From Paramoeba atlantica (taxonomy: Eukaryota > Protista > Discosea): a stretch of DNA of 13,633 nt. The position numbers and the translations under genes were made by a program. Below are positions 1 to 13,633 of the stretch, piece after piece (within the stretch, counting starts at the first letter, position 1; the number at the start of each line of letters is the position of its first letter). Below the pieces are notes generated by a model. That model did no database searches, was not told the origin of the DNA, and saw only the letters and a program-made list of their open reading frames with translations. The stretch is taken from NCBI GenBank assembly GCA_977017575.1, contig CDRNVI010000223.1, positions 1 to 13,633 on the forward strand. Reading direction: 5' to 3'.

Positions 1-354
1 CATTTACTATCAGGTCATGTGCATGGAGTTGGTACTGTGCATAATATCATTAATACGCCAACTCAATACGATTTACATATTCATGTTCCACAAGCTTGGC
101 TACCCTATATTGTTGCTAAAGGCTTTATTGGCTTAAATGGATCGAGTTTAACGGTTGTTGATGTGGACCATTCACAATCAACGTTTAGTGTGTCTCTTAT
201 CCCAGAAACGTTGAAACGCACACGTTTTGCTGACCGCCAAGTGGGTGATCGACTGAATGTCGAACTCGATCAACAAACGCGTACTATTGTTGATACAGTG
301 ACGCGTATTTTAAAAATAAATCTTGTACCACTGATTGACACTACGATCCATTAG
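1..354 (+). CDS. ribE: Riboflavin synthase (alpha chain), 5'-truncated by the window edge
   Basis: Frame is open from base 1 (HLLSGHVHGVG...). It shows the C-terminal riboflavin synthase motifs KGFIGLNGSSLTV, SLIPETL and VNVELD-like LNVELDQQTRTIVDTV, resembling the stand-alone E. coli RibC type. Confidence 0.93.
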   Translation, partial: HLLSGHVHGVGTVHNIINTPTQYDLHIHVPQAWLPYIVAKGFIGLNGSSLTVVDVDHSQSTFSVSLIPETLKRTRFADRQVGDRLNVELDQQTRTIVDTVTRILKINLVPLIDTTIH

Positions 355-2290
355 CGATTGTCGTTATCAACTGATCGTTAAATTGTTTATCTTTGATTTT
401 AATCTTGCTCTCTTTCAGCAAATTCGCTAAGAATTGTTCGTAATCATAACTTGCCATCATTTGCATCAATTGTTGTTGATAACGTAAGCGCGCCATGGCA
501 TCCTTTTCAATCTTTTTAGTTAATTTGCCGGGATGTACAGCATTTACTCGAACTAATACATAATCCCCAGATGGCAGCGTAATACCGCCATAGCTTGGTT
601 GTTGTGAGGTTGGAGGTGGCAATGTAAATGCATAATCAGCAATGGCAGGTGTCACCTTCTGACTATTGCGGTTAATACTAGCTGCTTTCCACGCAACATG
701 CATGTTAGTCAATTCAGTTGTTTTTACCCCATTGCCCAACTTAGTCAGCATTGGTTTGCCGATTGCTTGCGCACGCGCTGCACTACTTTGTTTAATCAGA
801 GTTTGTTTAATGCTTTGATGTACATCCGCCAACGGACGCACTTGTTTTGGAGTGTGTTTTATTACTCGCAATACGATCACCGACTTGGCATCAAGAGCAA
901 TCACATCACTATTATTACTGTTGATTAGCACATCATTACTAAATGCGGCATTAACCACACGTTTATTCGCAGCAATGCCGGTCTTTGCCCCAGCACGAGT
1001 AAAGGTATCGCTTTGTTGGATCGGTAAATTCAATTGTTGGCTTGCTTTAGTCAAACTATCTGGATTTTCATAGGTAATGCTAGCCAATAATTCACTGTCA
1101 TTGGCAAACAACGTTTCTGCTTTTTGCTGGGTTAACAGTGTTTTAATTCGTGCTTTCACTTTAGCAAACGGTTGCACAACAGCGGGTTTGACACTGAGTA
1201 ATTTAATAATCTCATAACCATATTGCGTCTTAATTGGATCAGCAACCTTTCCTGGCTTTAACCCAGACACGGCTGCATCAAATTTAGCACCTAATACGCC
1301 AAGTGCATAGCCGACTAACACACCGCCTTTATTTGCAGTTAATCCATCTTGAGAATAGCGTTTAGCCAATTTAGTAAAGTTGGCACCTTGGCGCAATTGA
1401 CTGACTATCTGATCAGCTTGTTGTTTCACTTGTTGGGTTGCTTGCTCGTTAGCATCAGCTGGAACACTCAATAATATATGCGCCACGTGCCAAGTCGGTG
1501 ACGTAGTATATTGTTCACGATGTGTTTGGTAATACTCTTCAAGATCGTGATTAGTTAGCTGAATGGGTTTGGCTAATTTATCGATGGACAGCGTAATATA
1601 GGCAATACGCACTCGCTCTGGCACACTAAAATTTTCTTGATGCTGCTGATAATACTGTGCAATATCAGCATCATTAACCTTAATCTTTTTGGCAAACTGT
1701 TTTGCTGAAATGGTTGCGTAATGGATATCACGTGTCTGCAATCCTAGCCCAATAAATTCATCTAATTCATTTGGCAAAATAAACGTACTGTCTTCAAATG
1801 TCGCGCGCAATTGCTGGTTAACAAATTGGGTTTTAATCTGTTGTAAAAATGCTGCTGGACTAATGCCTTGGACACTTAACGCATTTAGAAAACGTTGCTG
1901 AGAAAATTGTCCCTCTTGTTGAAAGGCAGGAATTTGCGCGATAACGGCATTTATCTGTACATCAGATGCCATTAAGCCCAGTTTGGTTAATTGCTGATAC
2001 ATGACTTGTTCAAGTAACAAGGTATTTAAGGCTTGCTGCCATAATTTGCGATCAGATGATGCGCTATTGTCACCCTCTTCAAGCGTTGCCTGTTGATTGC
2101 GTTGTAAGTGTTGATATTGTTGGTTTAATTGTTCACGACTGACTTCATGACCATTCACTGTGGCCACAACATCCGATTGACCTAGGTGAAAATAACTGGA
2201 AAATCCCCATACAACAAATGCCAAACACAGCACAATAATAATTGTCCATGCAATCCACCCTTGTGATTTATCACGAATGCTTTGCAGCAT
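341..2290 (-). CDS. ppiD: PpiD, inner-membrane-anchored periplasmic chaperone (SurA-N domain + parvulin-like domain)
   Basis: 649 aa. Typical start MLQSIRDKSQGWIAW followed by one TM helix, VATVNGHEV, and a parvulin-like segment VAHILL...FTKLAKRYSQD...KGG. GGGG RBS 6 nt upstream of the ATG. Confidence 0.92.
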   Translation of the reverse strand: MLQSIRDKSQGWIAWTIIIVLCLAFVVWGFSSYFHLGQSDVVATVNGHEVSREQLNQQYQHLQRNQQATLEEGDNSASSDRKLWQQALNTLLLEQVMYQQLTKLGLMASDVQINAVIAQIPAFQQEGQFSQQRFLNALSVQGISPAAFLQQIKTQFVNQQLRATFEDSTFILPNELDEFIGLGLQTRDIHYATISAKQFAKKIKVNDADIAQYYQQHQENFSVPERVRIAYITLSIDKLAKPIQLTNHDLEEYYQTHREQYTTSPTWHVAHILLSVPADANEQATQQVKQQADQIVSQLRQGANFTKLAKRYSQDGLTANKGGVLVGYALGVLGAKFDAAVSGLKPGKVADPIKTQYGYEIIKLLSVKPAVVQPFAKVKARIKTLLTQQKAETLFANDSELLASITYENPDSLTKASQQLNLPIQQSDTFTRAGAKTGIAANKRVVNAAFSNDVLINSNNSDVIALDAKSVIVLRVIKHTPKQVRPLADVHQSIKQTLIKQSSAARAQAIGKPMLTKLGNGVKTTELTNMHVAWKAASINRNSQKVTPAIADYAFTLPPPTSQQPSYGGITLPSGDYVLVRVNAVHPGKLTKKIEKDAMARLRYQQQLMQMMASYDYEQFLANLLKESKIKIKDKQFNDQLITTIANGS

Positions 2291-2768: not shown

Positions 2769-3137
2769 TTAAATAACACCAGAATATTCTACTGTAAATG
2801 TTGTTTCTGGCATTCCAGCATGATGCTCTACTGGTAAATTTTCTTCTTTCAAATGCCAAATTGATGGTTGCGGTATAAATCTATCAAGCCACTCACGTTC
2901 TGGTTCTGATAACGGTTTCTCTTGTGTTGTATCGGGCAAATACACCACCGCTTTTGCTTTGTTAACATCCCCATCTTCTTCACCCTTAACTTCAACTTCC
3001 TCAACAGTTAATCCATATTTATTGATTAAAAAATAATCCATTAAAAAATTAGCATAATCTTCTTGATCCTCCCCTTGCTGTAATAACAAAGTACCCAGCA
3101 CAATGATGGGATCAATATCTTTGATATAAACAGCCAA
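2769..3137 (-). CDS. Hypothetical acidic protein, or the C-terminal fragment of the upstream disrupted gene
   Basis: 122-aa ORF with only a TTG start. The frame is open up to 3218 and overlaps the neighbouring ORF. Confidence 0.45.
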   Translation of the reverse strand: MAVYIKDIDPIIVLGTLLLQQGEDQEDYANFLMDYFLINKYGLTVEEVEVKGEEDGDVNKAKAVVYLPDTTQEKPLSEPEREWLDRFIPQPSIWHLKEENLPVEHHAGMPETTFTVEYSGVI

Positions 3138-4000
3138 GTTACTGGTACTATCTTGCCTTTGTTGCCAATTTGTTTTTCTATATTGTTGATAACAACAATC
3201 AATAAATGGTAAGTTTTCTCATCATTAGGTAATTTTTTTGCAGAATCAGCTTTCATTAAACTTGAAAAGCCCAAAAAGCAATCAAATGGATCTTCAGTTA
3301 ATATTTTATGAAGATAATCAACATATTGCTGTGAAAAATAAGGCAATAAGTCAAGTAATAGTGGCATGACAACATCAAATAACCACGGATCATAAAAAGT
3401 GCCTTTTGCAACATGCACTGAAAAGAGTGATTTTAATACCAAATACATTTTATCTGTACTAGTTTCAAGTTTAACCAACGCCATAATATAGTTTTTTATT
3501 GATTCTTTACAATTCCATCTATTATTAGATTCAATTTTTCTTATAACAAAATCACTGACCTTTTCTATCCATCCTTCTTTGTATTGCAACATTTCTTTCG
3601 CTTGTAGATTTTTTTCTATCAATGTTGGAATAACATCCAATAAATTTCCTATAATATTAAAGTTATCATTATTTTCAGCATAATTAAGTGAAAAAATAAT
3701 GTCTATATATTTTTCAAACTCAAATTGATTTCTGCACACTTGAATAAAACCAATATAATAAAATGTAAATCCCCAATTCGGATTTGGAGATAATTGCATG
3801 ATTCTATCAATCCATTCATATTTTTTTTCTTTAAAAATAAAAGCAAAAAATCGTCTTTTTTCCACTATGGTTGCTTCTTGCTGAAAATGTTGAACAAAGT
3901 GGTTAAAACAACCATCTGAAAAATTCTGGTTTATGATCCAAGAAATTCTTTTTTTATATAAATTATTTTTGAATATCCCTTCAATTAATCGGAGAATACT
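3041..4000 (-). pseudogene. AT-rich, probably alpha-helical hypothetical protein, 5'-truncated by the IS3 element
   Basis: The frame of the 3041-3865 ORF stays stop-free up to the IS boundary (SILRLIEGIFKNNLYKKRISWIINQNF...) with no ATG. The first stop is inside the IS at 4061-4063. Confidence 0.7.
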
Positions 4001-4078
4001 ACGGTAACCCTCCCATAAAATAGACCTGTTTATAAGTAGAATATTCTGATAATTTATTACTCATCAGGAGATTTTGCG

Positions 4079-4366
4079 ATGAAGAAAAGTAAATTGAGCA
4101 CGACCCAAATAGTAACGATGTTGTCGGAAGGAGAAGCGGGATTATCGGCAGGGGATTTATGCCGCAAATATCAGATTTCGTCTGCGACCTATTATAAGTT
4201 AAGAAGTCAATATGCGGGTATGAGTGTGTCTGAGCTAAAACGCTTAAAGGAACTAGAGGCAGAGAATCAGCGATTAAAAGCGATGTATGCTGATATTAGC
4301 TTGGAACATAAGATATTAAAAGAGGTACTTGAAAAAAAGTATCCAGAGCTGCTAGACGAGAATTAG
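4079..4366 (+). CDS. IS3-family transposase OrfA (HTH)
   Basis: MKKSKLSTTQIV...DLCRKYQISSATYYKLRSQYAGMSVSELKRLKELEAENQRLK. AGGAG RBS at 4066-4070. Confidence 0.93.
   Translation: MKKSKLSTTQIVTMLSEGEAGLSAGDLCRKYQISSATYYKLRSQYAGMSVSELKRLKELEAENQRLKAMYADISLEHKILKEVLEKKYPELLDEN
4333..4339 (+). other. Programmed -1 ribosomal frameshift site A-AAA-AAG
   Basis: The heptamer is in the correct phase with orfA (E-K-K). A -1 shift reads VSRAARRELVSAICQRYSLSINRSC straight into orfB, giving a ~372-aa OrfAB. Confidence 0.85.
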
Positions 4367-5196
4367 TCAGTGCAATTTGCCAGAGATATTCATTGAGTAT
4401 TAATCGCAGTTGCCAACTGATGTCTATCAGCAAGACAGGGTATTACTACAAGAGCAAGAAGCATACATCAGATGGAGAAATATTATCTTATTTGCTTAAT
4501 TTAACAGACAAGTATACACGTTGGGGATTTGACAAGATGATGTTGAAAGTTAAACAAGAGCAAAGAGGTTGGAACCATAAACGTGTTTATCGAGTTTACC
4601 GTGAACATGGGTTAAATATTAGGATAAAGCCTCGTAAACGATTAGCCAAAGGAGAAGCAAAGATGTTGTTGCAACCTATTGCCAGGAATATCTGTTGGTC
4701 GATTGATTTTATGTCAGATGCATTAGCATGTGGCACTAAGTTTAGAACGTTTAATGTTATTGATGATTATAACCGTGAATGTTTGCTGATTGAGGCAAGT
4801 TATTCTTTTCCAGCCAAGCGAGTAACGCAATTGCTTGACCAAGTTGCCATAACCCAAGGTTATCCAACAATGATACGTGTTGACCACGGGCCAGAATTTG
4901 AGTCTTATCATTTCAAGGAGTGGGCTAAGCAACATCACATATTGCTTCACTTCATTCAGCCTGGCAAGCCAGCACAAAATGGATTTATTGAGCGTTTTAA
5001 CCGTACGTATCGTGAAGATGTATTGGACATGAACTTGTTTAGAAATTTTAATGAAGTCAGAAAAATTACTCAGCAGTGGATCAACTGCTACAACCAAGAT
5101 AGGCCACATGAATCGTTGGCTGGACTGTCTCCTGTGCAGTTCAGACAATACCGGAAACAAATCACAGGCAATGAGAAATTTTCTACTGTAGACTAG
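4337..5196 (+). CDS. IS3-family transposase OrfB (DDE/rve integrase core), expressed as an OrfAB fusion
   Basis: WSIDFMSD, RVDHGPEF and QNGFIERFNRT carry the D-D-E triad. No internal stops. Confidence 0.93.
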
Positions 5197-5563: not shown

Positions 5564-5773
5564 ATGGCAAACGGTATAGTAAAATTTTTCAACACGGCCA
5601 AGGGCTATGGCTTCATCGCTCCTGATGATGGCTCAAAAGACATCTTTGTTCATATCAGCGCATTAGAAAAAGCTGGTCTACGTCAACTGAATGATGGACA
5701 AAAAGTCTCTTACCAAATAGAGACTAATAATGGCAAGACTTCTGCCGTAGATATTCAGCTACAAGACGGCTAA
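5564..5773 (+). CDS. cspA: Cold-shock protein, CspA family
   Basis: 69 aa with RNP1 KGYGFI and RNP2 [16 protein letters not shown]. Confidence 0.96.
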
Positions 5774-5866
5774 TATCACTCATCCAATTCTAATTGCTCA
5801 AAGCAGATTACGCCGTCATTTGTGTGTGGCATTTGGCGTGCGTTTATCTGTGACAAGGGGATAAAC

Positions 5867-7057
5867 ATGAAAACATTTCAAGAAATGGGGCTTCCGGAAA
5901 CCCTGATACATACTTTGCAGCATATGCAATTCAATGAACCAACCCCTATTCAGGCTAAGGTCATTCCTCTGGCATTGCAAGGCAAAGATATATTGGGATC
6001 AGCGCAAACTGGAACGGGTAAAACCGGTGCCTTTGGTATCCCACTTGTTGCAAAACTGTTATCCAACCCCCTTGCTTCTGCGCTAGTGATGACACCGACG
6101 CGTGAGCTTGCCACACAGGTGATGAGCCAATTACAAGCCATGCTGGGTAAGAAATCAAAGATCAAATCGGCTTTACTAATTGGTGGTCAATCTATGCCGA
6201 AGCAGTTTGCTCAGCTTCGTAATCATCCACGCGTTATTGTGGGCACACCCGGACGTATTAATGATCACCTCAAGCGTGGCACTTTGAAGCTTCATGATAC
6301 TGATTTTCTGGTACTGGATGAAACAGATCGAATATTGGACATGGGTTTTACCATCCAAATTGAGAATGTAATGAAATATATGGCTGCTAAACGTCAGACA
6401 TTGTTATTTTCAGCTACGTTGCCGAAAAATATTGTGCGAATTGCTGAAAAATATCTAAATAAGGCTGTCCGTGTTGCTGTGAGTGCAACGTCAGCACCCG
6501 CCGCCAATATCAAACAAGATATTCTGCGAATTAGTGAAGCAGATAAATACCCCAACTTGCTCTCTCAGCTCGAGAAGCGAGCAGGCTCGATTATTGTATT
6601 TGTAAAAACAAAATATGGTACCGAAAAAATGGCTGCCAAACTCTCGAAGGATGGCCACAGCGCTGATGCTATTCACGGTAATCTTCGTCAAAACAAGCGT
6701 GATCGAGTGATGGCTGCCTTCCGCAATAAAAAATACCGCATTCTTGTTGCAACTGATGTTGCAGCTCGTGGTTTGGATATTCCTCATATCAAGCACGTCA
6801 TCAATTATGACCTACCTCAATCTGCAGAAGATTATATTCACCGCATTGGTCGTACAGCCAGAGCTGGAGCAGAGGGCTCTGCCCTGAACCTCGTAACACC
6901 TTCCGACAAAATGAAATGGAATACAATTTGTCGGCTGCTTAACCCAGATGCACCAGCAAAAAAATTAAGCAAACCAAAGCGTAATAGCAAAAAATCAAAT
7001 AAGTTCAGAGGCAACCACAAACCTTTTGACCAAAAGCCAAGTCGAAAAGTCGCTTAA
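5867..7057 (+). CDS. DEAD-box ATP-dependent RNA helicase (RhlE-like, DETD variant)
   Basis: Q motif PTPIQ, AQTGTGKT, PTRELA, GG, TPGR, DETD, SAT, ARGLD and HRIGRTAR, with a short basic C-tail. The ATG at 5867 has an AAGGGG RBS, so it is preferred over the GTG at 5822. Confidence 0.94.
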   Translation: MKTFQEMGLPETLIHTLQHMQFNEPTPIQAKVIPLALQGKDILGSAQTGTGKTGAFGIPLVAKLLSNPLASALVMTPTRELATQVMSQLQAMLGKKSKIKSALLIGGQSMPKQFAQLRNHPRVIVGTPGRINDHLKRGTLKLHDTDFLVLDETDRILDMGFTIQIENVMKYMAAKRQTLLFSATLPKNIVRIAEKYLNKAVRVAVSATSAPAANIKQDILRISEADKYPNLLSQLEKRAGSIIVFVKTKYGTEKMAAKLSKDGHSADAIHGNLRQNKRDRVMAAFRNKKYRILVATDVAARGLDIPHIKHVINYDLPQSAEDYIHRIGRTARAGAEGSALNLVTPSDKMKWNTICRLLNPDAPAKKLSKPKRNSKKSNKFRGNHKPFDQKPSRKVA

Positions 7058-7505: not shown

Positions 7506-10500
7506 TTACTTATTTCCCTGTGTCGTTAAGAGAGAGTAAGAATTACTCTTTTTCTTATCCTCTTTATCGTCGTCATCACCGGTATCAGACGGCGATAACT
7601 GCCCAAAAAATGACAAACGTGGCGGTGGCGGCTGCGATGAACCCCGTAGTCGCTGCCGTGACGACTGTCTTTCTTTCTCCAAAACAAGCGGCGACTTTCG
7701 CGACGTGGGCTGCTGTTGCATGAGAGGAATAAGAGTAGCATCCTCCTCCTTACCTTCTTCTTTACCCTTCTTCTTATCGCTGTAATCGAGATCAGACGGT
7801 GATGTGTTCTGCGACGGTGATTGCGACGGCGGTGTGGTTGATGACGCAAGCCCAAAAAAAGGCAAATTCGACGACGGTATTTCCAATTTCTTAGACGATT
7901 GCGACGCCAGCTGTGATGACGATGCATGCGACTCCGGTATAACCAGTGGAGACACCGCCGAGAGAATCGACGACTTCGACGGCAGCTTTTCCGACAACGA
8001 CTCCAAAAACGACGGTTTCTTTCCTCCTGTTAAAGGGTCCTCATCGGTAGCAGTGACCTCTTCTTTCGGCGACTGAAACTGCGACGGTACCGGATTTGAT
8101 ATAACTAATGGAGACGGCGGTGGAGGAGACCGCTTTACTCCTACCGACTTCTTCAAAGACGGCGACGGCAGCTTTTCCGACAACGACTCCAAAAACGACG
8201 GTTTCTTTCCTCCTGTTAAAGGGTCCTCATCGGTAGCGGTGACCTCTTCTTTCGGCGACTGAAATTGCGACGGTACCGGATTTGATATAACTAATGGAGG
8301 TGGCGATGGAGGAGACCGTTTTACTCCTACCGACTTCTTCAAAGACTGGGATGAGAACTGTGACGACAACGACTCCAAAAACGATGGTTTCTTCTCCCCT
8401 GTTAAAGAATCCTGCTCAGTGGCAGTGACCTCTTCTTTCGGTGACTGAAGTGTCGAGCGTAGCGGTGGCAACGGTTGCGGTTTGTTACTAGTATCATCCG
8501 GCAGAGGCGCCTGCGGTTGCGACAATCTCCGTCTCCATTGTCGCGGTTGCGACGATGGTATTTGCGGCCGCGGTGACGGTTCTGGCTGTGGCGTTTGCGG
8601 CCGCGATGACGTTTGCTTTGACAAAGAAGAAGGCTGTTTGTTACTTCCCCCTTTCTTTTTTCGATTTACTACCTTTAGGTTTAGCCTTATCCCTTTCTTT
8701 TGAGCACCCTTATTTTCCCCTTTAGGAGGAGCACTACCTACCTGTTGGGCTTCCCTATTTTCTACTTTAGGAGACGCACCATCTATCTGTTGAGCCTCCC
8801 TATTTCCCCCCTGAACATCAACATTTTCTACTTCAGAAGATGATGCATCACTTACATGTTGAACGTCTTGCACATCACCATCTCTCTCCTGAGAACCGCT
8901 ATCTTCTGATTGAACGCCTTGAACATCATCATCTTCCTCTTTACCGTCACTATCTCCCATAGGTATTGGCAGTCTCAGTTGTTTAGAAAAGTTTTGCTCA
9001 GGATTAGAGCGACGATAACAGCAATACAATATCGTGGCAGAAATTGTAGAAACTAGAAACAACGGTGCCAAAACAAATTGTATCCACCATGTAAATCTAT
9101 CATCAGGCTCAAGATTAGAAAATGGGCTCGGACTTGGCGTTGGCGTTAAACTTGGGCTTGGGCCTGTACTCGGTGATAAATCCGAACTCGGTGCCGGACT
9201 CGGACTTACACTTGGACTGGGCGATGAACTCGAAATCGGTATCGGACTCGGACTTACACTTGGACTGGGCGATGAACTCGAAATCGGTATCGGACTCGGA
9301 CTTATGCTTGGACTGGGTGATAAACTCGAAATCGGTACCGGACTCGGACTTGGCTCTGGACTGGGTGATAAACTCGAACTCGATATCGGACTCGGACTTA
9401 TGCTTGGACTGGGTGATGAACTTGAACTCGGTATCGGACTCGGACTTGGAGATGAACTCGGCGATGAACTCGAACTCGGTACCGGACTCGGACTTGGGAT
9501 TGGATTTGGCGATGAACTCGGAATCGGTGACGGACTTGAGTTCGAACTCGGACTTGGTGGCCACATCGGGCAATTTCTAGTATCCACCGAAAAACATCCC
9601 GTACCATCGTTAAAACCAGGTCTAATTGTTTTTTCACAACTCACTTTTTGGTTAAAAAAACCTGTCTCTGCTAATTTTGCAACTTTGTCTGATTCAGGGC
9701 CTTTGATCACATTAGCTTGAACAACATTCGGATGTTCAGTAAATGCTATATGCGGATACCCGACTGCTTGTCCATAAAAGGTCACTGTCTCTCCTGTGAC
9801 TGCATTGCCATTGAATGTCACGATACCAGATGTACTAAAATTCGTGATCTGTGTTGCATTGAACCCTAATAACACTTCCGACACACTGCTGCCATCTGGC
9901 TTGAGTACGGTTAGAGTTAATCCGTCAATCTGTGTATGACCCACGCCAACATACTCTGCATTTCCTTGTGTGATAACTACTAATATGATGTTATTTCCAT
10001 AGCTACCACATAGGCTAGCACTCCCTCTTGCATGTTGCAGATAAAGCTCCAGCTCAGCATTAGTCAGATTGGCATACGTTATCCCCGCTGATAACCTACA
10101 AATACCATGAATAATTATTACATTACTTAAATCACCGCCGTGAATGCCCGGTAGAGTTGGATACAGTAATTTTGCTTTTCGTAAAATGGGGTTCTTTAAC
10201 GTAGCTCCTAGTAAATCTTGCAATATTTGTAGGGCTATTAAGTAAAATGCTGGCCCACCGTCAGCAACATTTGCAATTAATTGACGCTTATCCATACCAT
10301 CAGTCACCTTCACATCATGGCAGTAATATAAACTACCTCGTGGTACGACTGTTTCACCATCAATTGCCACTGTAAATGTCGAGTTGTTTGCCTGGGCAAG
10401 TTCACCTATATTCACTGCAGAGCCACTCTCTTTACCGTAATCAAAAAAGGCTTGATTGACCTCTGGCGAAATCTCATCAGCCATTTCAACACATATACTT

Positions 10501-11981
10501 GTTTCTGGTCTGCCCGATATAATTGAAAACACCCTGACTGTTTTGTCGTAACACGCCATATGTCGCGTATCTTCACACGGTAGCTCGTCGGATAGTCCTC
10601 TACGTTCCTTCTGACGATTTAACCAACGATTTCCTCCAATCGTAGCAATCCAGTTGCTGGCAAAATCTATTAGCTCCACCTGATTTGAGAGCGCATTCGA
10701 GCTTGACTGATAAGAAGAAAGGGAACTTGATCCACTGTTCGCTATCGCACCTGACCCTGCTAAAGGATCAACATCTTTGCTTCCTGATATACCCCGAGTG
10801 ACTGCAGCCGTAGCACCCATTGCCATCAACGGAACAACCCAACCCTTGCTTACTCCAAATTCAGCAGTATGTTTCCCAGACAGTGCTAATAAAGTCGTTA
10901 CGGCTAAACCTGTTACAGCAGCCTTTGGTAATACAGTTGCAGCTAACATAGTTGCACCAACACCCGCAGCACCTAACGCTGCTGTCGTCGCAACTGATGT
11001 CACTATCTCAGTTGCAGTTTGTTGTTGTTCCGTCTCTTCTTCAATCTCATCCAACGCCCCTTCATCATCGAGATCTCTGTACCACTGCGCAAACGAATTA
11101 GGATTGCGTCTTTTTACCAATTCAGGATGACGATCTGCTGCTTGGTGATAGATAAGCGCAGGGTTCTCAATTAAATACGCTCGAAATCCTAAGTGTTTGC
11201 TTAAACTGTCAAAACATTCTGTTTTTAAACGCTCGATAGCTTGCTCTTCTGTCAAACGTAATGTTGCAAGTATCGGATTTTCACCTATGATGGGGTGATT
11301 TATAATGTCAGGCTTTCTATGTAGTAATGCCCCAAGCTTATATAATGCTGAAAACTTAGGTGGTTCACTCACAAGATAAATAGGGGAAGTATTAGCTAAC
11401 TCGTTAAGCAAACAGCCAACTTCTACAGCGTATAAATCAACGTCTTCTAGATCAATTTCACCTACTTCTTCTGAATCATCATCTAGTTGAAAATTGGCTC
11501 TCTCTCCTAAAAAGTTCGCCACTTTTTGAAAGTTATCTGCTTGCTCTAAAAAGCTGATCAGCTTAATGAAATTAAATACAAACGTAAGACGTGCAGTAAA
11601 ATCATCTCCTGAATCATACAACAAACCTGGAATATGTTTAGCTGTACAGCCAGCATCATGATCCAATGCAGGGTGGTAAATTAAACTAGGATACTTAGCA
11701 AGAGCCGTTTGAAATTGCTTATTATTGAGCGTTAAGTCGTTAAATGATTCTTGGTCGAAATTGTCTTGGACGAAATCTAATAGTTCGACCGCTTCGATAA
11801 ACTTGCGTTTATCCCAGCTAGAAAGCCTCAATTGCTTAACAATATCTCCTATTGTTAATTTACTTTGCTGCTGCGCAGTCACAGATTGAAGTCGTTGTAT
11901 TTTCTGCTGTTCAGGCTGTCTCTGCCCAACGTTGCTACTTTCAACTGATTGTTCACTATGCTCATCAAGATCCTGACTCAT
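7506..11981 (-). CDS. Large eukaryote-like membrane protein (~1491 aa), putative secreted effector
   Basis: Long stop-free ORF. AGGGGG RBS 7 nt before ATG 11981. Hydrophobic cluster at ~10800-11006, TM helix at 9009-9089, Ser/Pro repeats and a low-complexity repeat tail. No signal peptide. Confidence 0.88.
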   Translation of the reverse strand: MSQDLDEHSEQSVESSNVGQRQPEQQKIQRLQSVTAQQQSKLTIGDIVKQLRLSSWDKRKFIEAVELLDFVQDNFDQESFNDLTLNNKQFQTALAKYPSLIYHPALDHDAGCTAKHIPGLLYDSGDDFTARLTFVFNFIKLISFLEQADNFQKVANFLGERANFQLDDDSEEVGEIDLEDVDLYAVEVGCLLNELANTSPIYLVSEPPKFSALYKLGALLHRKPDIINHPIIGENPILATLRLTEEQAIERLKTECFDSLSKHLGFRAYLIENPALIYHQAADRHPELVKRRNPNSFAQWYRDLDDEGALDEIEEETEQQQTATEIVTSVATTAALGAAGVGATMLAATVLPKAAVTGLAVTTLLALSGKHTAEFGVSKGWVVPLMAMGATAAVTRGISGSKDVDPLAGSGAIANSGSSSLSSYQSSSNALSNQVELIDFASNWIATIGGNRWLNRQKERRGLSDELPCEDTRHMACYDKTVRVFSIISGRPETSICVEMADEISPEVNQAFFDYGKESGSAVNIGELAQANNSTFTVAIDGETVVPRGSLYYCHDVKVTDGMDKRQLIANVADGGPAFYLIALQILQDLLGATLKNPILRKAKLLYPTLPGIHGGDLSNVIIIHGICRLSAGITYANLTNAELELYLQHARGSASLCGSYGNNIILVVITQGNAEYVGVGHTQIDGLTLTVLKPDGSSVSEVLLGFNATQITNFSTSGIVTFNGNAVTGETVTFYGQAVGYPHIAFTEHPNVVQANVIKGPESDKVAKLAETGFFNQKVSCEKTIRPGFNDGTGCFSVDTRNCPMWPPSPSSNSSPSPIPSSSPNPIPSPSPVPSSSSSPSSSPSPSPIPSSSSSPSPSISPSPISSSSLSPSPEPSPSPVPISSLSPSPSISPSPIPISSSSPSPSVSPSPIPISSSSPSPSVSPSPAPSSDLSPSTGPSPSLTPTPSPSPFSNLEPDDRFTWWIQFVLAPLFLVSTISATILYCCYRRSNPEQNFSKQLRLPIPMGDSDGKEEDDDVQGVQSEDSGSQERDGDVQDVQHVSDASSSEVENVDVQGGNREAQQIDGASPKVENREAQQVGSAPPKGENKGAQKKGIRLNLKVVNRKKKGGSNKQPSSLSKQTSSRPQTPQPEPSPRPQIPSSQPRQWRRRLSQPQAPLPDDTSNKPQPLPPLRSTLQSPKEEVTATEQDSLTGEKKPSFLESLSSQFSSQSLKKSVGVKRSPPSPPPLVISNPVPSQFQSPKEEVTATDEDPLTGGKKPSFLESLSEKLPSPSLKKSVGVKRSPPPPSPLVISNPVPSQFQSPKEEVTATDEDPLTGGKKPSFLESLSEKLPSKSSILSAVSPLVIPESHASSSQLASQSSKKLEIPSSNLPFFGLASSTTPPSQSPSQNTSPSDLDYSDKKKGKEEGKEEDATLIPLMQQQPTSRKSPLVLEKERQSSRQRLRGSSQPPPPRLSFFGQLSPSDTGDDDDKEDKKKSNSYSLLTTQGNK
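7981..8449. repeat. Coding tandem repeat, 186-bp (62-aa) unit, ~2.5 copies
   Basis: GACAACGACTCCAAAAACGA recurs at 7993, 8179 and 8365. Unit: QSPKEEVTATDEDPLTGGKKPSFLESLSEKLPSPSLKKSVGVKRSPPPPSPLVISNPVPSQF. Confidence 0.97.
8691..8804. repeat. Degenerate coding repeat, 45-bp (15-aa) unit, ~2.5 copies
   Basis: NREAQQIDGASPKVE / NREAQQVGSAPPKGE / NKGAQKKG. The Asn codons are at 8802, 8757 and 8712. Confidence 0.75.
9124..9560. repeat. Coding tandem repeat, 48-bp (16-aa, Ser/Pro-rich) unit built from hexamers, ~8 copies
   Basis: GGACTCGGACTT starts units at 9196, 9244, 9292, 9340, 9388, 9436 and 9484. Encodes SPSPSVSPSPIPISSS-like units. Confidence 0.97.
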
Positions 11982-12165
11982 CACAAAACCCCCTGACATG
12001 TCAATGATTAATGATTATTTACTTTTTAGTTGAAATAGTTATTGAAATAGTTTTAGTCTTTCAGAAAACATAATCGCAAACTGTTACAACTGTTTTCTCG
12101 GTTAAAAGCTTTGAGTATGTGAGTTTATATTGTTTGACTTATGCTTAATTTCTCTTCTCAATACG

Positions 12166-13543
12166 TTATAGTGTAAATAGACATGCTGCCTCGCTGGCAG
12201 TACAAATTTCACCCATGCCTCCAGGCCCCCAAGCTGGTGGACCGACTACTCCAGTTGTATCACCTCGAGTAACAGCCAAAGTGACCATATTATCGTAATA
12301 TTCACACCTTGCTTCTCCCAACGCATCGAATTGAGCATCAATGAAAGAAGCATTATCAAGATCAAATCCAACTGCTGACCCTAACCAACCCTCACCACCG
12401 TACTCACCACCACCAAGGGCTTGCAGCTCACTTGGCAACAAACACCTGACTGTAGACAGTTGTTTGTCAACAACAGCCAACACCGCTGTCATCCGTACTG
12501 CTGGATCCCGTATCCAATTTAATAGACTTTGATGTTGTCCGTGTTCTAAATCATTATACGTCCCAGTACCTGGATTTAATGATACATTCAAACGCCCACC
12601 ATTGCTATAGAAGCGACGGTGCGTCGCTAAACTGTCGACATAATCAGTAATTGCCATCAATTCCAATTGCATACCAGCAGGCGATGGCATTAACCAACCG
12701 ATACTACCCCTATACTGACGCTGTGTATGCTGTAACTGCGTACCAAACGTGGCTTTTAATCGTGGTAACAATCGTTGTTCTAATCTCACATGACCACCAA
12801 CACCATCGACATCATCATCATGTGCATCATACTTCGAATTAAAACGCACAATGTCGTAATCCATACCACCGGATAATCGACTGTGTGACCATAAGTGCAA
12901 TGCAACGTTAACATGCACATTACCACTGTTGGCACCCGCTATACGGCGTTGTTCGGTATAAACATTATCAGCTATTTTATCAGAGAGGTTTTTGCTACCC
13001 GAGTAGCTATAGTAACCACCAAAGCCAACTGACTCGATATATGCATTATCGATTAAGTAGGCATAATCACCTCCCACGGCATTTTGATATACCCATCTTG
13101 ATACCGTGCCAGAATCAAAACTAAAATCTAAATTTTCACCTAAAAAACTCATACGTTAATTTAATGCGATGTTTATCCGTTAACCCTAAACCATAAGTAG
13201 TATTCACTCGAATCACATTTGGACCACCGGCAATTTCCAACGCCAGTGCATTTCGTTGAGCTGCATCTAAATAGCTCGCAGCTTTGAGGTCGGTAATAAA
13301 ACCCAACTCCGTATCACCATAAGCACCCATGCTAAATACTTCTGAGTTAACTCTGCCATTACTGGTAGTTGTACTGGATTGCTTAGGACGTATTCTTGAA
13401 GCAGTTGCCCGTCGTTTGGGTAATTTACCCGGGTTTGCTGCGATAATAGTTTGAGTTGAGACTGACCCTATCATTGTAACAATGATTGCGACTAACAGGC
13501 TAAAAGCAAACTGATTACATTTGCTAGTGTGTTTGCTCATCAT
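12166..13543 (-). pseudogene. Inverse autotransporter (intimin/invasin-like, type Ve) beta-barrel protein split by a 1-nt frameshift
   Basis: N-terminal signal-peptide-like segment (MMSKHTSK...FAFSLLVAIIVTMIG). Beta-strand-like segments GPNVIRVNTTYG, RIKLTYEF, WVYQNAVGGDYAY, RRIAGA and LLNWIRDPAVRM resemble Legionellales inverse-autotransporter beta domains as I recall them. Removing one T from the T6 run (13142-13147) joins both ORFs into ~458 aa. Confidence 0.72.
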
Positions 13544-13633
13544 CTTTTCCCTATAAATCCTTTTAAAGAGAATTGTGTCACCACACACAAGGTATCGACT
13601 GTACGATAACGTGGCCTAGATTGACTTCCCTTA

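Follow-up and report, generated by a model that had tools for sequence, protein, structure and literature searches.

Tandem 62-residue repeats with a WH2-like pattern in the disordered tail of an orphan, predicted membrane protein of bacterial origin

Tandem repeats that pair a WH2-like sequence with a proline-rich segment were pointed out in an earlier note on this locus as the possible mark of an actin nucleator or recruiter, and the question is whether they are WH2 motifs, docking sites of another kind, or an expansion with no bearing on actin. In this work we analysed the window, a stretch of 13,633 nucleotides, whose minus strand carries at positions 7506–11999 an intact, stop-free open reading frame of 1497 amino acids (AA) that contains the repeats; all features described below lie on this strand. 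The 62 AA repeats are real: Tandem Repeats Finder returns a 186-bp period in 2.5 copies at 7977–8449 (90% matches, no indels, score 769), a DNA repeat far beyond chance, with units starting at AA 1184, 1246 and 1308. The sequence KKPSFLESL is found at AA 1203, 1265 and 1327 and LKKSV at AA 1220 and 1282. In unit 1 the WH2-like block, composed of KK, the helix hydrophobics, a linker and LKKSV, extends from AA 1203 to 1224 (8328–8393) and is followed by the proline-rich block RSPPSPPPL, which fits [RK]xxPxxP (AA 1228–1236, 8292–8318). In unit 2 the corresponding blocks are AA 1265–1286 (8142–8207) and RSPPPPSPL (AA 1290–1298, 8106–8132). Unit 3 has only the helix block (AA 1327–1335, 7995–8021); it is the same as unit 2 over the first 34 codons, with one nucleotide difference, and diverged beyond, and it retains SPLVI where LKK is lost. 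The positions first given for the helix, LKKSV and proline blocks are all exact, and so is the rest of that description: LKK is separated by eight residues from the Leu that ends the helix block, two prolines are present in the linker of unit 2, the position after LKK is Ser (then Val) in units 1 and 2, and both LKK and the proline block are absent from unit 3. The two full motif copies arose by a single duplication and should be counted once.

Comparison of the unit copies by the Nei-Gojobori method gives, overall, a pS of 0.295 and a pN of 0.094 (pN/pS about 0.3), and the repeat units are under mild purifying selection. Conservation of the helix and LKK is judged here on two paralogous copies of one protein: between them the helix and LKKSV blocks show no non-synonymous change over 35 sites, and the linker that joins them is highly variable (pN 0.39). 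The SPLVIS…QSPKEEV block is conserved as strongly as the helix and LKKSV blocks, and the module consists of three conserved blocks, KKPSFLESLS, SLKKSVGVKRSPP and SPLVISNPVPSQ.QSPKEEV, with freely varying patches between them. The synonymous changes form clusters that coincide with those of the replacements; because the two kinds of difference cluster together, the conservation of the blocks may be due in part to gene conversion rather than to selection.

The remainder of the protein was divided into regions on the basis of composition, hydropathy and an AlphaFold2 model computed without alignment, the two halves of which have a mean pLDDT of 34 and 39. The N-terminal domain (AA 1–330, 11010–11999) is acidic, lacks a signal peptide and is predicted to contain helices (pLDDT 39); Pfam and PDB sequence searches with it gave no match. 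It is followed by a hydrophobic region rich in Ala, Gly, Thr and Val (AA 332–404, 10788–11006), with two to three moderately hydrophobic helices by hydropathy, around which the low-confidence model places helices at 315–353, 359–381 and 385–404. The next domain (AA 434–810, 9570–10700) contains all nine cysteines of the protein, resembles folded domains in composition, with a mixture of helix and strand predicted, and gave no match in a Pfam search; the only PDB match, of AA ~485–561 to an Ig C1-set domain, is non-significant (E 0.2–0.9). A stalk made of 46% Ser and 33% Pro, with 48/144-bp tandem repeats (AA 811–962, 9114–9569), leads to a strongly hydrophobic predicted transmembrane helix (AA 967–993, 9021–9101). 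Acidic residues precede this helix and Arg-Arg follows it, and for this reason the tail is expected on the cytoplasmic side. The tail itself (AA 995–1497, 7509–9017; S 17%, P 13%, K 9%, Q 9%) is 503 AA long, disordered by charge-hydropathy and composition, and all coil in the low-pLDDT model. Besides the 62 AA array it contains a 45-bp tandem repeat of 2.4 copies (15 AA units, 8700–8805). Within its last 40 residues, Asp and Glu form a block between about −23 and −17 that is followed by a Lys/Ser/Asn/Thr-rich end, and none of the final three residues is hydrophobic. A second duplicated module, FFG…SPSD, was considered near the C-terminus and is unsupported (BLASTP E = 1). Promoter, terminator, Rfam and tRNA scans yielded nothing above background.

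The 1497 AA protein is an orphan, without detectable relatives in the databases searched. Only the protein itself was recovered by an exhaustive HMMER search of AA 1–810 against 1.84 billion representative proteins, by word-indexed searches (AA 1–860, AA 1150–1497 within the full-length protein, and the tail alone), by a scan of genome contigs, by scanning metagenomes for the array and by tblastn against PLSDB. Pfam and NCBIfam contain no family either for the whole protein or for six sub-pieces, and a PDB search with the whole protein returned only a composition-driven match in the Ser/Pro stalk and the Ig C1-set match mentioned above. The gene lies among bacterial genes (ppiD, a cspA-like gene, a DEAD-box helicase, the bio operon) and occurs on a metagenome contig as well as on the closed 2.45-Mb chromosome (OZ220716.1) of a metagenome-assembled genome (MAG), of which 24.5 kb were read. 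In 47 metagenome loci anchored on the helicase, nothing resembles the large gene or the orphans beside it, and the slot downstream of the helicase is occupied by unrelated genes. GC3 is 0.29–0.33 in the N-terminal parts of the gene, equal to that of the neighbouring genes, which argues that the gene is native, and 0.45 in the tail. The source is an uncultured gammaproteobacterium, probably host-associated. Hints on lifestyle come from the 2.45-Mb chromosome of the MAG, from a mevalonate kinase gene that adjoins the biotin operon and from an IS3 transposase closest to copies on Piscirickettsia salmonis plasmids.

The reading that we tentatively prefer, with a probability of about 0.4, is that the repeats are a recently duplicated 62 AA module of short linear motifs in the disordered, cytoplasm-side tail of a membrane protein particular to its lineage, a tail that probably serves as a docking platform facing a host. 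The hydrophobic region AA 332–404 and the helix AA 967–993 would be the anchors; the N-terminal domain would share the cytoplasmic side with the tail, and the Cys-bearing domain with its Ser/Pro stalk would lie opposite, a topology suggested by the charges that flank the last helix and by the confinement of the nine cysteines to AA 434–810. After putative export the tail would face the host cytosol and act as a multivalent docking platform, the valency of which would be raised by duplication of the module. The WH2-like block makes G-actin a candidate partner, and KRSPPxP does the same for SH3-type proline readers, although [RK]xxPxxP does not occur above chance in this tail; the tail would not be a tandem-WH2 nucleator of the VopL/Spire type. 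The strong hydrophobicity of the last helix and the size of the part between the anchors, about 560 residues, speak against host-facing docking. A precedent in favour of it is that about one-third of type IV effectors have transmembrane segments, most of them with both termini in the cytoplasm (Nin-Cin; PMC12981334). The periplasmic loops of known type IVB transmembrane effectors are short, large ones hindering translocation (PMC11602083, PMC12981334). In the orphan the charges support a cytoplasmic C-terminus, yet the inter-anchor part is far from a short loop.

The same features suit a protein that never leaves the bacterium. It would be a resident of the inner membrane, with a signal-anchor, a periplasmic Cys domain on a Ser/Pro stalk, a stop-transfer helix and a tail in the bacterial cytoplasm, and the repeats would be a low-complexity expansion or bacterial docking sites whose eukaryote-like look is coincidental. 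A cytoplasmic N-terminus, a periplasmic domain and a cytoplasmic C-terminus form a frequent bacterial layout. The restriction of the cysteines to the inter-helix domain, the strongly hydrophobic last helix followed by Arg-Arg and the large inter-helix part, at odds with the known type IVB transmembrane effectors, also favour it. GC3 is native over most of the gene, and motifs at the level of a pattern are within what chance provides genome-wide. This explanation nevertheless appears unlikely, if a serious contender: a 503 AA tail that is rich in Ser, Pro, Lys and Gln and contains both proline blocks and tandem modules is odd for a bacterial cytoplasmic domain, and the first hydrophobic region is no more than moderately hydrophobic. 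Furthermore, a singleton absent from the neighbourhoods of the nearest relatives resembles a host-interaction gene more than envelope housekeeping, and the pN/pS ratio argues against pure junk.

The original proposal goes beyond docking: the repeats would be genuine WH2 motifs, binding G-actin through its subdomain 1/3 cleft, and would act with the adjacent proline tracts to recruit or nucleate actin where the protein is tethered, at a host membrane. We applied the published sequence criteria for WH2 (bioRxiv 10.1101/467431; PMC8102491), and units 1 and 2 agree with them at pattern level: basic residues precede the helix, the helix has three hydrophobics, a Ser stands directly before the last (key) one, and LKK has both basic residues, no internal proline and the form of an LKKV-type C-terminal element. 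The KK followed by F, L, x, x, L occurs in all three units. The disordered setting also favours this proposal, as do the constancy of helix and LKKSV between copies that differ freely in the linker, as a WH2 loop would. The profile check that had been suggested came out negative: hmmscan against Pfam-A found no WH2 at E ≤ 10 in the whole protein, the tail, the 157 AA array, the 62 AA units or the 33 AA pieces, a result to be read with the fact that HMMER filters drop many matches above E~0.1, which makes a very weak WH2 match possible. PDB sequence searches with the array and with the 33 AA motif piece (E ≤ 10) gave no match either. The WH2-like call stood for the pattern (KK, hydrophobics, LKK) and did not extend to profiles or solved chains.

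As evidence, the motif pattern is weaker than the DNA repeat. The pattern that we scored, of our own design from the published description, is ΦΦ-x-x-Φ (Φ, hydrophobic), 5–11 residues, then LKK[TVSA]. When the de-duplicated tail is shuffled, only 0.15% of the randomized sequences contain it, a rarity in favour of true WH2 motifs. Ordinary bacterial open reading frames also contain it, four times in a sample of 122,588 residues. This corresponds to about 24 chance occurrences in a genome of 2.45 Mb, a number that drops to about 6 when a basic residue is demanded at the N-terminus, and it weighs against them. The helix block has a hydrophobic moment of 0.40–0.43, which ranks within the top 10% of windows in the tail and is a moderate amphipathicity, and it is coil in the model (pLDDT < 50). 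From the first Lys to the Val the WH2-like block measures 22 AA, compared with a WH2 norm of about 17 AA (bioRxiv 10.1101/467431); its loop has 8 residues, and the loop of unit 2 has two prolines. The equal conservation of the SPLVIS…QSPKEEV block, and the fact that SPLVI outlasts LKK in unit 3, also weigh against true WH2 motifs. The likeness of the repeats to WH2 motifs is that of a short, chance-prone pattern.

The nucleator part of the proposal fits less well. Tandem-WH2 nucleators would be expected to have proline tracts long enough for the recruitment of profilin-actin; in the repeats no more than four prolines follow one another. Bacterial actin assembly factors do pair actin-binding motifs with proline-rich regions (PMC9569871), which is in favour of actin recruitment by the tail. 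However, tandem-WH2 assembly factors have at least three WH2s together with dimerization or another nucleating element (PMC9569871; bioRxiv 10.1101/467431), and their linkers are about 15 AA long (bioRxiv 10.1101/467431), whereas the orphan has only two complete motifs, Val1224 of the first being separated from Lys1265 of the second by 40 residues. The logic of tandem-WH2 nucleators, to which the earlier note had likened the repeats, is therefore a poor fit. The Sca2 'WH2s' provide a precedent: predicted from sequence and spaced by 45–55 AA, one sign against a real WH2, they failed to bind actin (bioRxiv 10.1101/467431). Exposure of the tail to a host and tethering to a host membrane are themselves putative, and the ~560 residues between the two hydrophobic regions set the protein apart from known type IVB transmembrane effectors. 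We consider actin recruitment or nucleation by true WH2 motifs to be distinctly improbable.

Finally, it is very improbable that the gene, or at least its stalk, helix and tail, encodes a eukaryotic type I membrane protein acquired by horizontal transfer or present as eukaryotic contamination, as, in spite of an extracellular-type domain with a weak Ig C1-set-like match at AA ~485–561, a mucin-like stalk, a single helix, a long disordered tail and a tail GC3 above that of the rest of the gene, the open reading frame is uninterrupted among bacterial genes in both the metagenome contig and the closed chromosome, AA 1–810 have no eukaryotic or other homologue among 1.84 billion representative proteins, the Ig match is non-significant and Pfam reports no Ig domain.

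If the tail of the putative docking platform faces the host cytosol, this locus would encode a membrane-anchored bacterial protein without family in which host-docking motifs evolve through tandem duplication, and possibly a new route of actin to a bacterial compartment. The boldest version, which we regard as a long shot, is an effector of a new kind that would sit in the compartment membrane, with a large luminal, possibly Ig-like domain on a mucin-like stalk and, in the cytosol, long-loop WH2s and SH3-type proline ligands that would gather actin monomers and their regulators. We know of no WH2 protein with a membrane-tethered arrangement of this kind. The case also illustrates that a WH2 call made by eye can fit the written consensus and yet fail every test above the pattern level, and it flags a large orphan gene of an uncultured, probably host-associated gammaproteobacterium as worth localizing.

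The orphan can be compared with several known systems. With WH2/beta-thymosin motifs (Pfam PF02205; ELM LIG_Actin_WH2) the repeats share a disordered setting, a basic start, a putative amphipathic helix with three hydrophobics, a loop and LKK followed by a small residue, but they go unrecognized by Pfam and have 22 AA, an 8-residue loop, LKKS and prolines in the loop of unit 2; actin binding is a candidate function. As in Vibrio VopL/VopF, Spire, Cobl and Burkholderia BimA, repeated candidate actin-binding motifs alternate with proline-rich segments; unlike in these proteins, there are two motifs, short proline runs and a membrane anchor, and no similarity to solved chains. Rickettsia Sca2 is another bacterial protein with widely spaced WH2-like motifs identified by eye, each off consensus; its motifs lie in a folded helical domain, whereas those of the orphan lie in a disordered region, which is more WH2-like, and keep the basic residues of LKK. 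Legionella pneumophila VipA is likewise a bacterial protein with a proline-rich region, tied to actin assembly; it is a soluble Dot/Icm effector without a clear WH2, and shows that such factors can do without one (PMC9569871). The orphan is a predicted membrane protein, and no sequence similarity to VipA came up in the database searches run with it. Eukaryotic type I membrane proteins have the same succession of cysteine-bearing ectodomain, mucin-like Ser/Pro stalk, helix, basic stop-transfer and disordered tail with motifs, but the gene is bacterial, and a 330 AA N-terminal domain and a helix cluster take the place of a cleaved signal peptide. Last, type IVB (Dot/Icm) transmembrane effectors and chlamydial Inc-type proteins typically have two helices joined by a short loop, in contrast with the ~560 residues between the hydrophobic regions here; what the orphan has in common with them is the lack of a signal peptide, a moderately hydrophobic helix cluster rich in Ala, Gly and Thr, two termini that are both predicted to be cytoplasmic, and perhaps the character of its C-terminus, acidic and then rich in Ser, Thr and Lys.

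The intact 1497-aa ORF at 7506–11999 (minus strand) holds a 186-bp tandem array of 2.5 copies at 7977–8449 (minus strand; Tandem Repeats Finder: 90% matches, no indels, score 769), which confirms the tandem repeats described in the earlier note. The motifs reported within them are all found where they had been placed: with units starting at amino acids (aa) 1184, 1246 and 1308, the helix block (KKPSFLESL) lies at aa 1203, 1265 and 1327, LKKSV at aa 1220 and 1282, and the proline blocks (RSPPSPPPL in unit 1, RSPPPPSPL in unit 2) at aa 1228 and 1290. Unit 3 is one nucleotide apart from unit 2 over 34 codons and divergent thereafter; the LKK motif and the proline block are gone from it, and SPLVI is kept seven codons out of register. 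Units 1 and 2 differ by 27 nucleotides and 12 amino acids, and the values of pS (0.295) and pN (0.094), from this one paralogous comparison, indicate that the array is translated and mildly constrained. We propose, with a probability of about 0.4, that a linear-motif module was recently duplicated in a disordered tail, and that this tail, on the cytoplasmic side, would be a multivalent platform for docking that most likely faces the host cytosol.

The protein begins with an acidic, helical domain without signal peptide (aa 1–330; 11010–11999, minus strand), in which a weak internal repeat is seen at P-[SA]-L-I-Y-H (aa ~79–114 and ~261–295; BLASTP E 0.05 in self-comparison). It is followed by two or three clustered, moderately hydrophobic helices rich in Ala, Gly, Thr and Val (aa 332–404), a domain with folded-protein composition that contains 9 of the 14 cysteines (aa 434–810), a Ser/Pro stalk (aa 811–962; 46% S, 33% P) and a strongly hydrophobic helix (aa 967–993) with acidic residues before it and Arg-Arg after; hydrophobicity values are rough, being plain sums over a hydrophobicity scale. 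By the charge-hydropathy criterion the tail (aa 995–1497; 7509–9017, minus strand) is disordered; the charge pattern would place it on the cytoplasmic side of this last helix, and the cysteines suggest that aa 405–966 lie on the far side of the membrane. AlphaFold2 without alignment gave pLDDT of 34 and 39, too low to assign a fold. The stalk is itself a tandem array (48-bp x 7.4, or 144-bp x 2.6; 9168–9536, minus strand), and the one PDB match that the full-length protein gives (E 4e-4) lies in it and is driven by composition. At aa ~485–561 (10150–10580, minus strand) a non-significant match to the Ig C1-set of MHC class II beta chains (E 0.2–0.9) spans the entire Ig domain and aligns the second cysteine; Pfam found no Ig domain in the protein. 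Together with stalk, helix and tail, this match would make a eukaryote-like type I layout. Upstream of a polybasic stretch, the tail also has a 45-bp x 2.4 repeat (8700–8805, minus strand), whose 15-aa units abound in Glu, Gln and Lys. Two C-terminal stretches (aa ~1366–1497; 7509–7904, minus strand) look similar by eye (Leu-x-Phe-Phe-Gly, SPSD, an acidic/Lys-rich run), and their duplication is unsupported (BLASTP E = 1). The main rival to a docking platform facing the host is an inner-membrane protein resident in the bacterium, with a tail that always stays inside the cell; we consider it somewhat less likely, and a point in its favour is the stretch of about 560 residues between the anchors.

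The earlier note took the repeats for tandem WH2-like motifs of a candidate actin nucleator or recruiter. A WH2 motif has about 17 aa: it starts with a basic residue, carries its key hydrophobics in a helix at the N-terminus and continues through a loop to a proline-free LKKV that has two basic residues; tandem copies lie in unstructured stretches, separated by about 15 aa (bioRxiv 10.1101/467431; PMC8102491). Units 1 and 2 agree with WH2 at the residue level and in their disordered setting, and a helix block and LKKSV with no replacement over 35 non-synonymous sites (about 3 expected at the unit average, P ~0.04), joined by a hypervariable linker (pN 0.39), would fit a WH2 loop. However, this last argument is weakened because replacements and synonymous differences fall in shared patches, which suggests mosaic gene conversion, because the block SPLVISNPVPSQ.QSPKEEV is conserved equally, and because the older third unit retains SPLVI and has lost LKK. 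Moreover, the Pfam WH2 profile has no match at E<=10 with any slicing of the protein, the array matches no PDB chain, WH2–actin complexes included, and the block is 22 aa long, with an 8-residue loop, two prolines in the loop of unit 2 and unremarkable amphipathicity. The WH2-like pattern is present in 0.15% of shuffled tails; among 314 ordinary ORFs of bacteria its frequency is 3.3e-5 per residue, a rate equivalent to ~24 occurrences in a genome of 2.45 Mb. With two complete motifs 40 aa apart and proline runs of four at most, the protein is probably not a tandem-WH2 nucleator. True WH2 motifs binding monomeric actin are improbable here; monomeric actin stays a candidate ligand for one of the three conserved blocks.

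The DNA of the window is bacterial, and a eukaryotic origin of the gene is highly implausible. A genome scan places the same locus on a 2.45-Mb chromosome (OZ220716.1, 'MAG: Gammaproteobacteria bacterium'), with one mismatch and one gap across 13.6 kb, and it recurs on a 12.5-kb ENA metagenome contig (L001, ERZ24894578; one mismatch, three gaps). On that contig, gene calling splits the 1497-aa gene into pieces of 222 and 1287 aa; as the gene is whole in the chromosome record, the split is probably due to an error of assembly or consensus. The wider locus includes bioBFHCD, ribE and mevalonate kinase; in a gammaproteobacterium that is small and low in GC, a mevalonate pathway may indicate a Legionellales-like intracellular lineage. 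The window carries ppiD (341–2290, minus strand), a very AT-rich orphan ORF without family (3041–3865, minus strand; GC 0.28, 274 aa), an IS3 element (4079–5196, plus strand) whose transposase most closely resembles (60% aa) the copies carried by Piscirickettsia salmonis plasmids, a cspA-like gene (5564–5773, plus strand) and a DEAD-box helicase (5822–7057, plus strand). In three related loci (L004, L047, L018) ppiD adjoins the helicase; in the window the orphan ORF and the IS3 element separate them (2769–5196). The upstream gene (12166–13588, minus strand; 8413–9834 of locus L002) is a single 473-aa ORF in the chromosome record and two overlapping ORFs in the window; a segment at its N-terminus resembles a signal peptide, and it belongs to no Pfam or NCBIfam family.

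Exhaustive HMMER with aa 1–810 against 1.84 billion representatives returned only two ENA-contig pieces of the same gene, and word-indexed searches with aa 1–860 and aa 1150–1497 within full-length candidates, and with the tail alone (covering candidates of 173–550 aa), returned the same gene only. Neither a metagenome scan with the array nor tblastn against plasmids gave a match, and 47 helicase-anchored metagenome loci, the nearest 80%, 76% and 69% identical, hold nothing like this gene; the slot beside the helicase in related loci is taken by gyrA, RTX/cadherin or LRR genes. Because no relatives were found and GC3 in the N-terminal two-thirds (0.29–0.33) equals that of the neighbours, the gene is native and lineage-specific, with a tail of somewhat distinct composition: GC3 is higher in tail (0.45) and array (0.53) than in the neighbours and the remainder of the gene (0.29–0.39), and the cause may be either a separate history or a composition imposed by the repeats.

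The WH2s of the Rickettsia protein Sca2, also called from sequence, widely spaced (45–55 aa, compared with 40 aa here) and each slightly off consensus, do not bind actin (bioRxiv 10.1101/467431), a precedent against reading the repeats as WH2. In known transmembrane effectors of the type IVB kind the periplasmic loops are short, large loops hindering export (PMC11602083; PMC12981334), and in this they differ from the protein described here.
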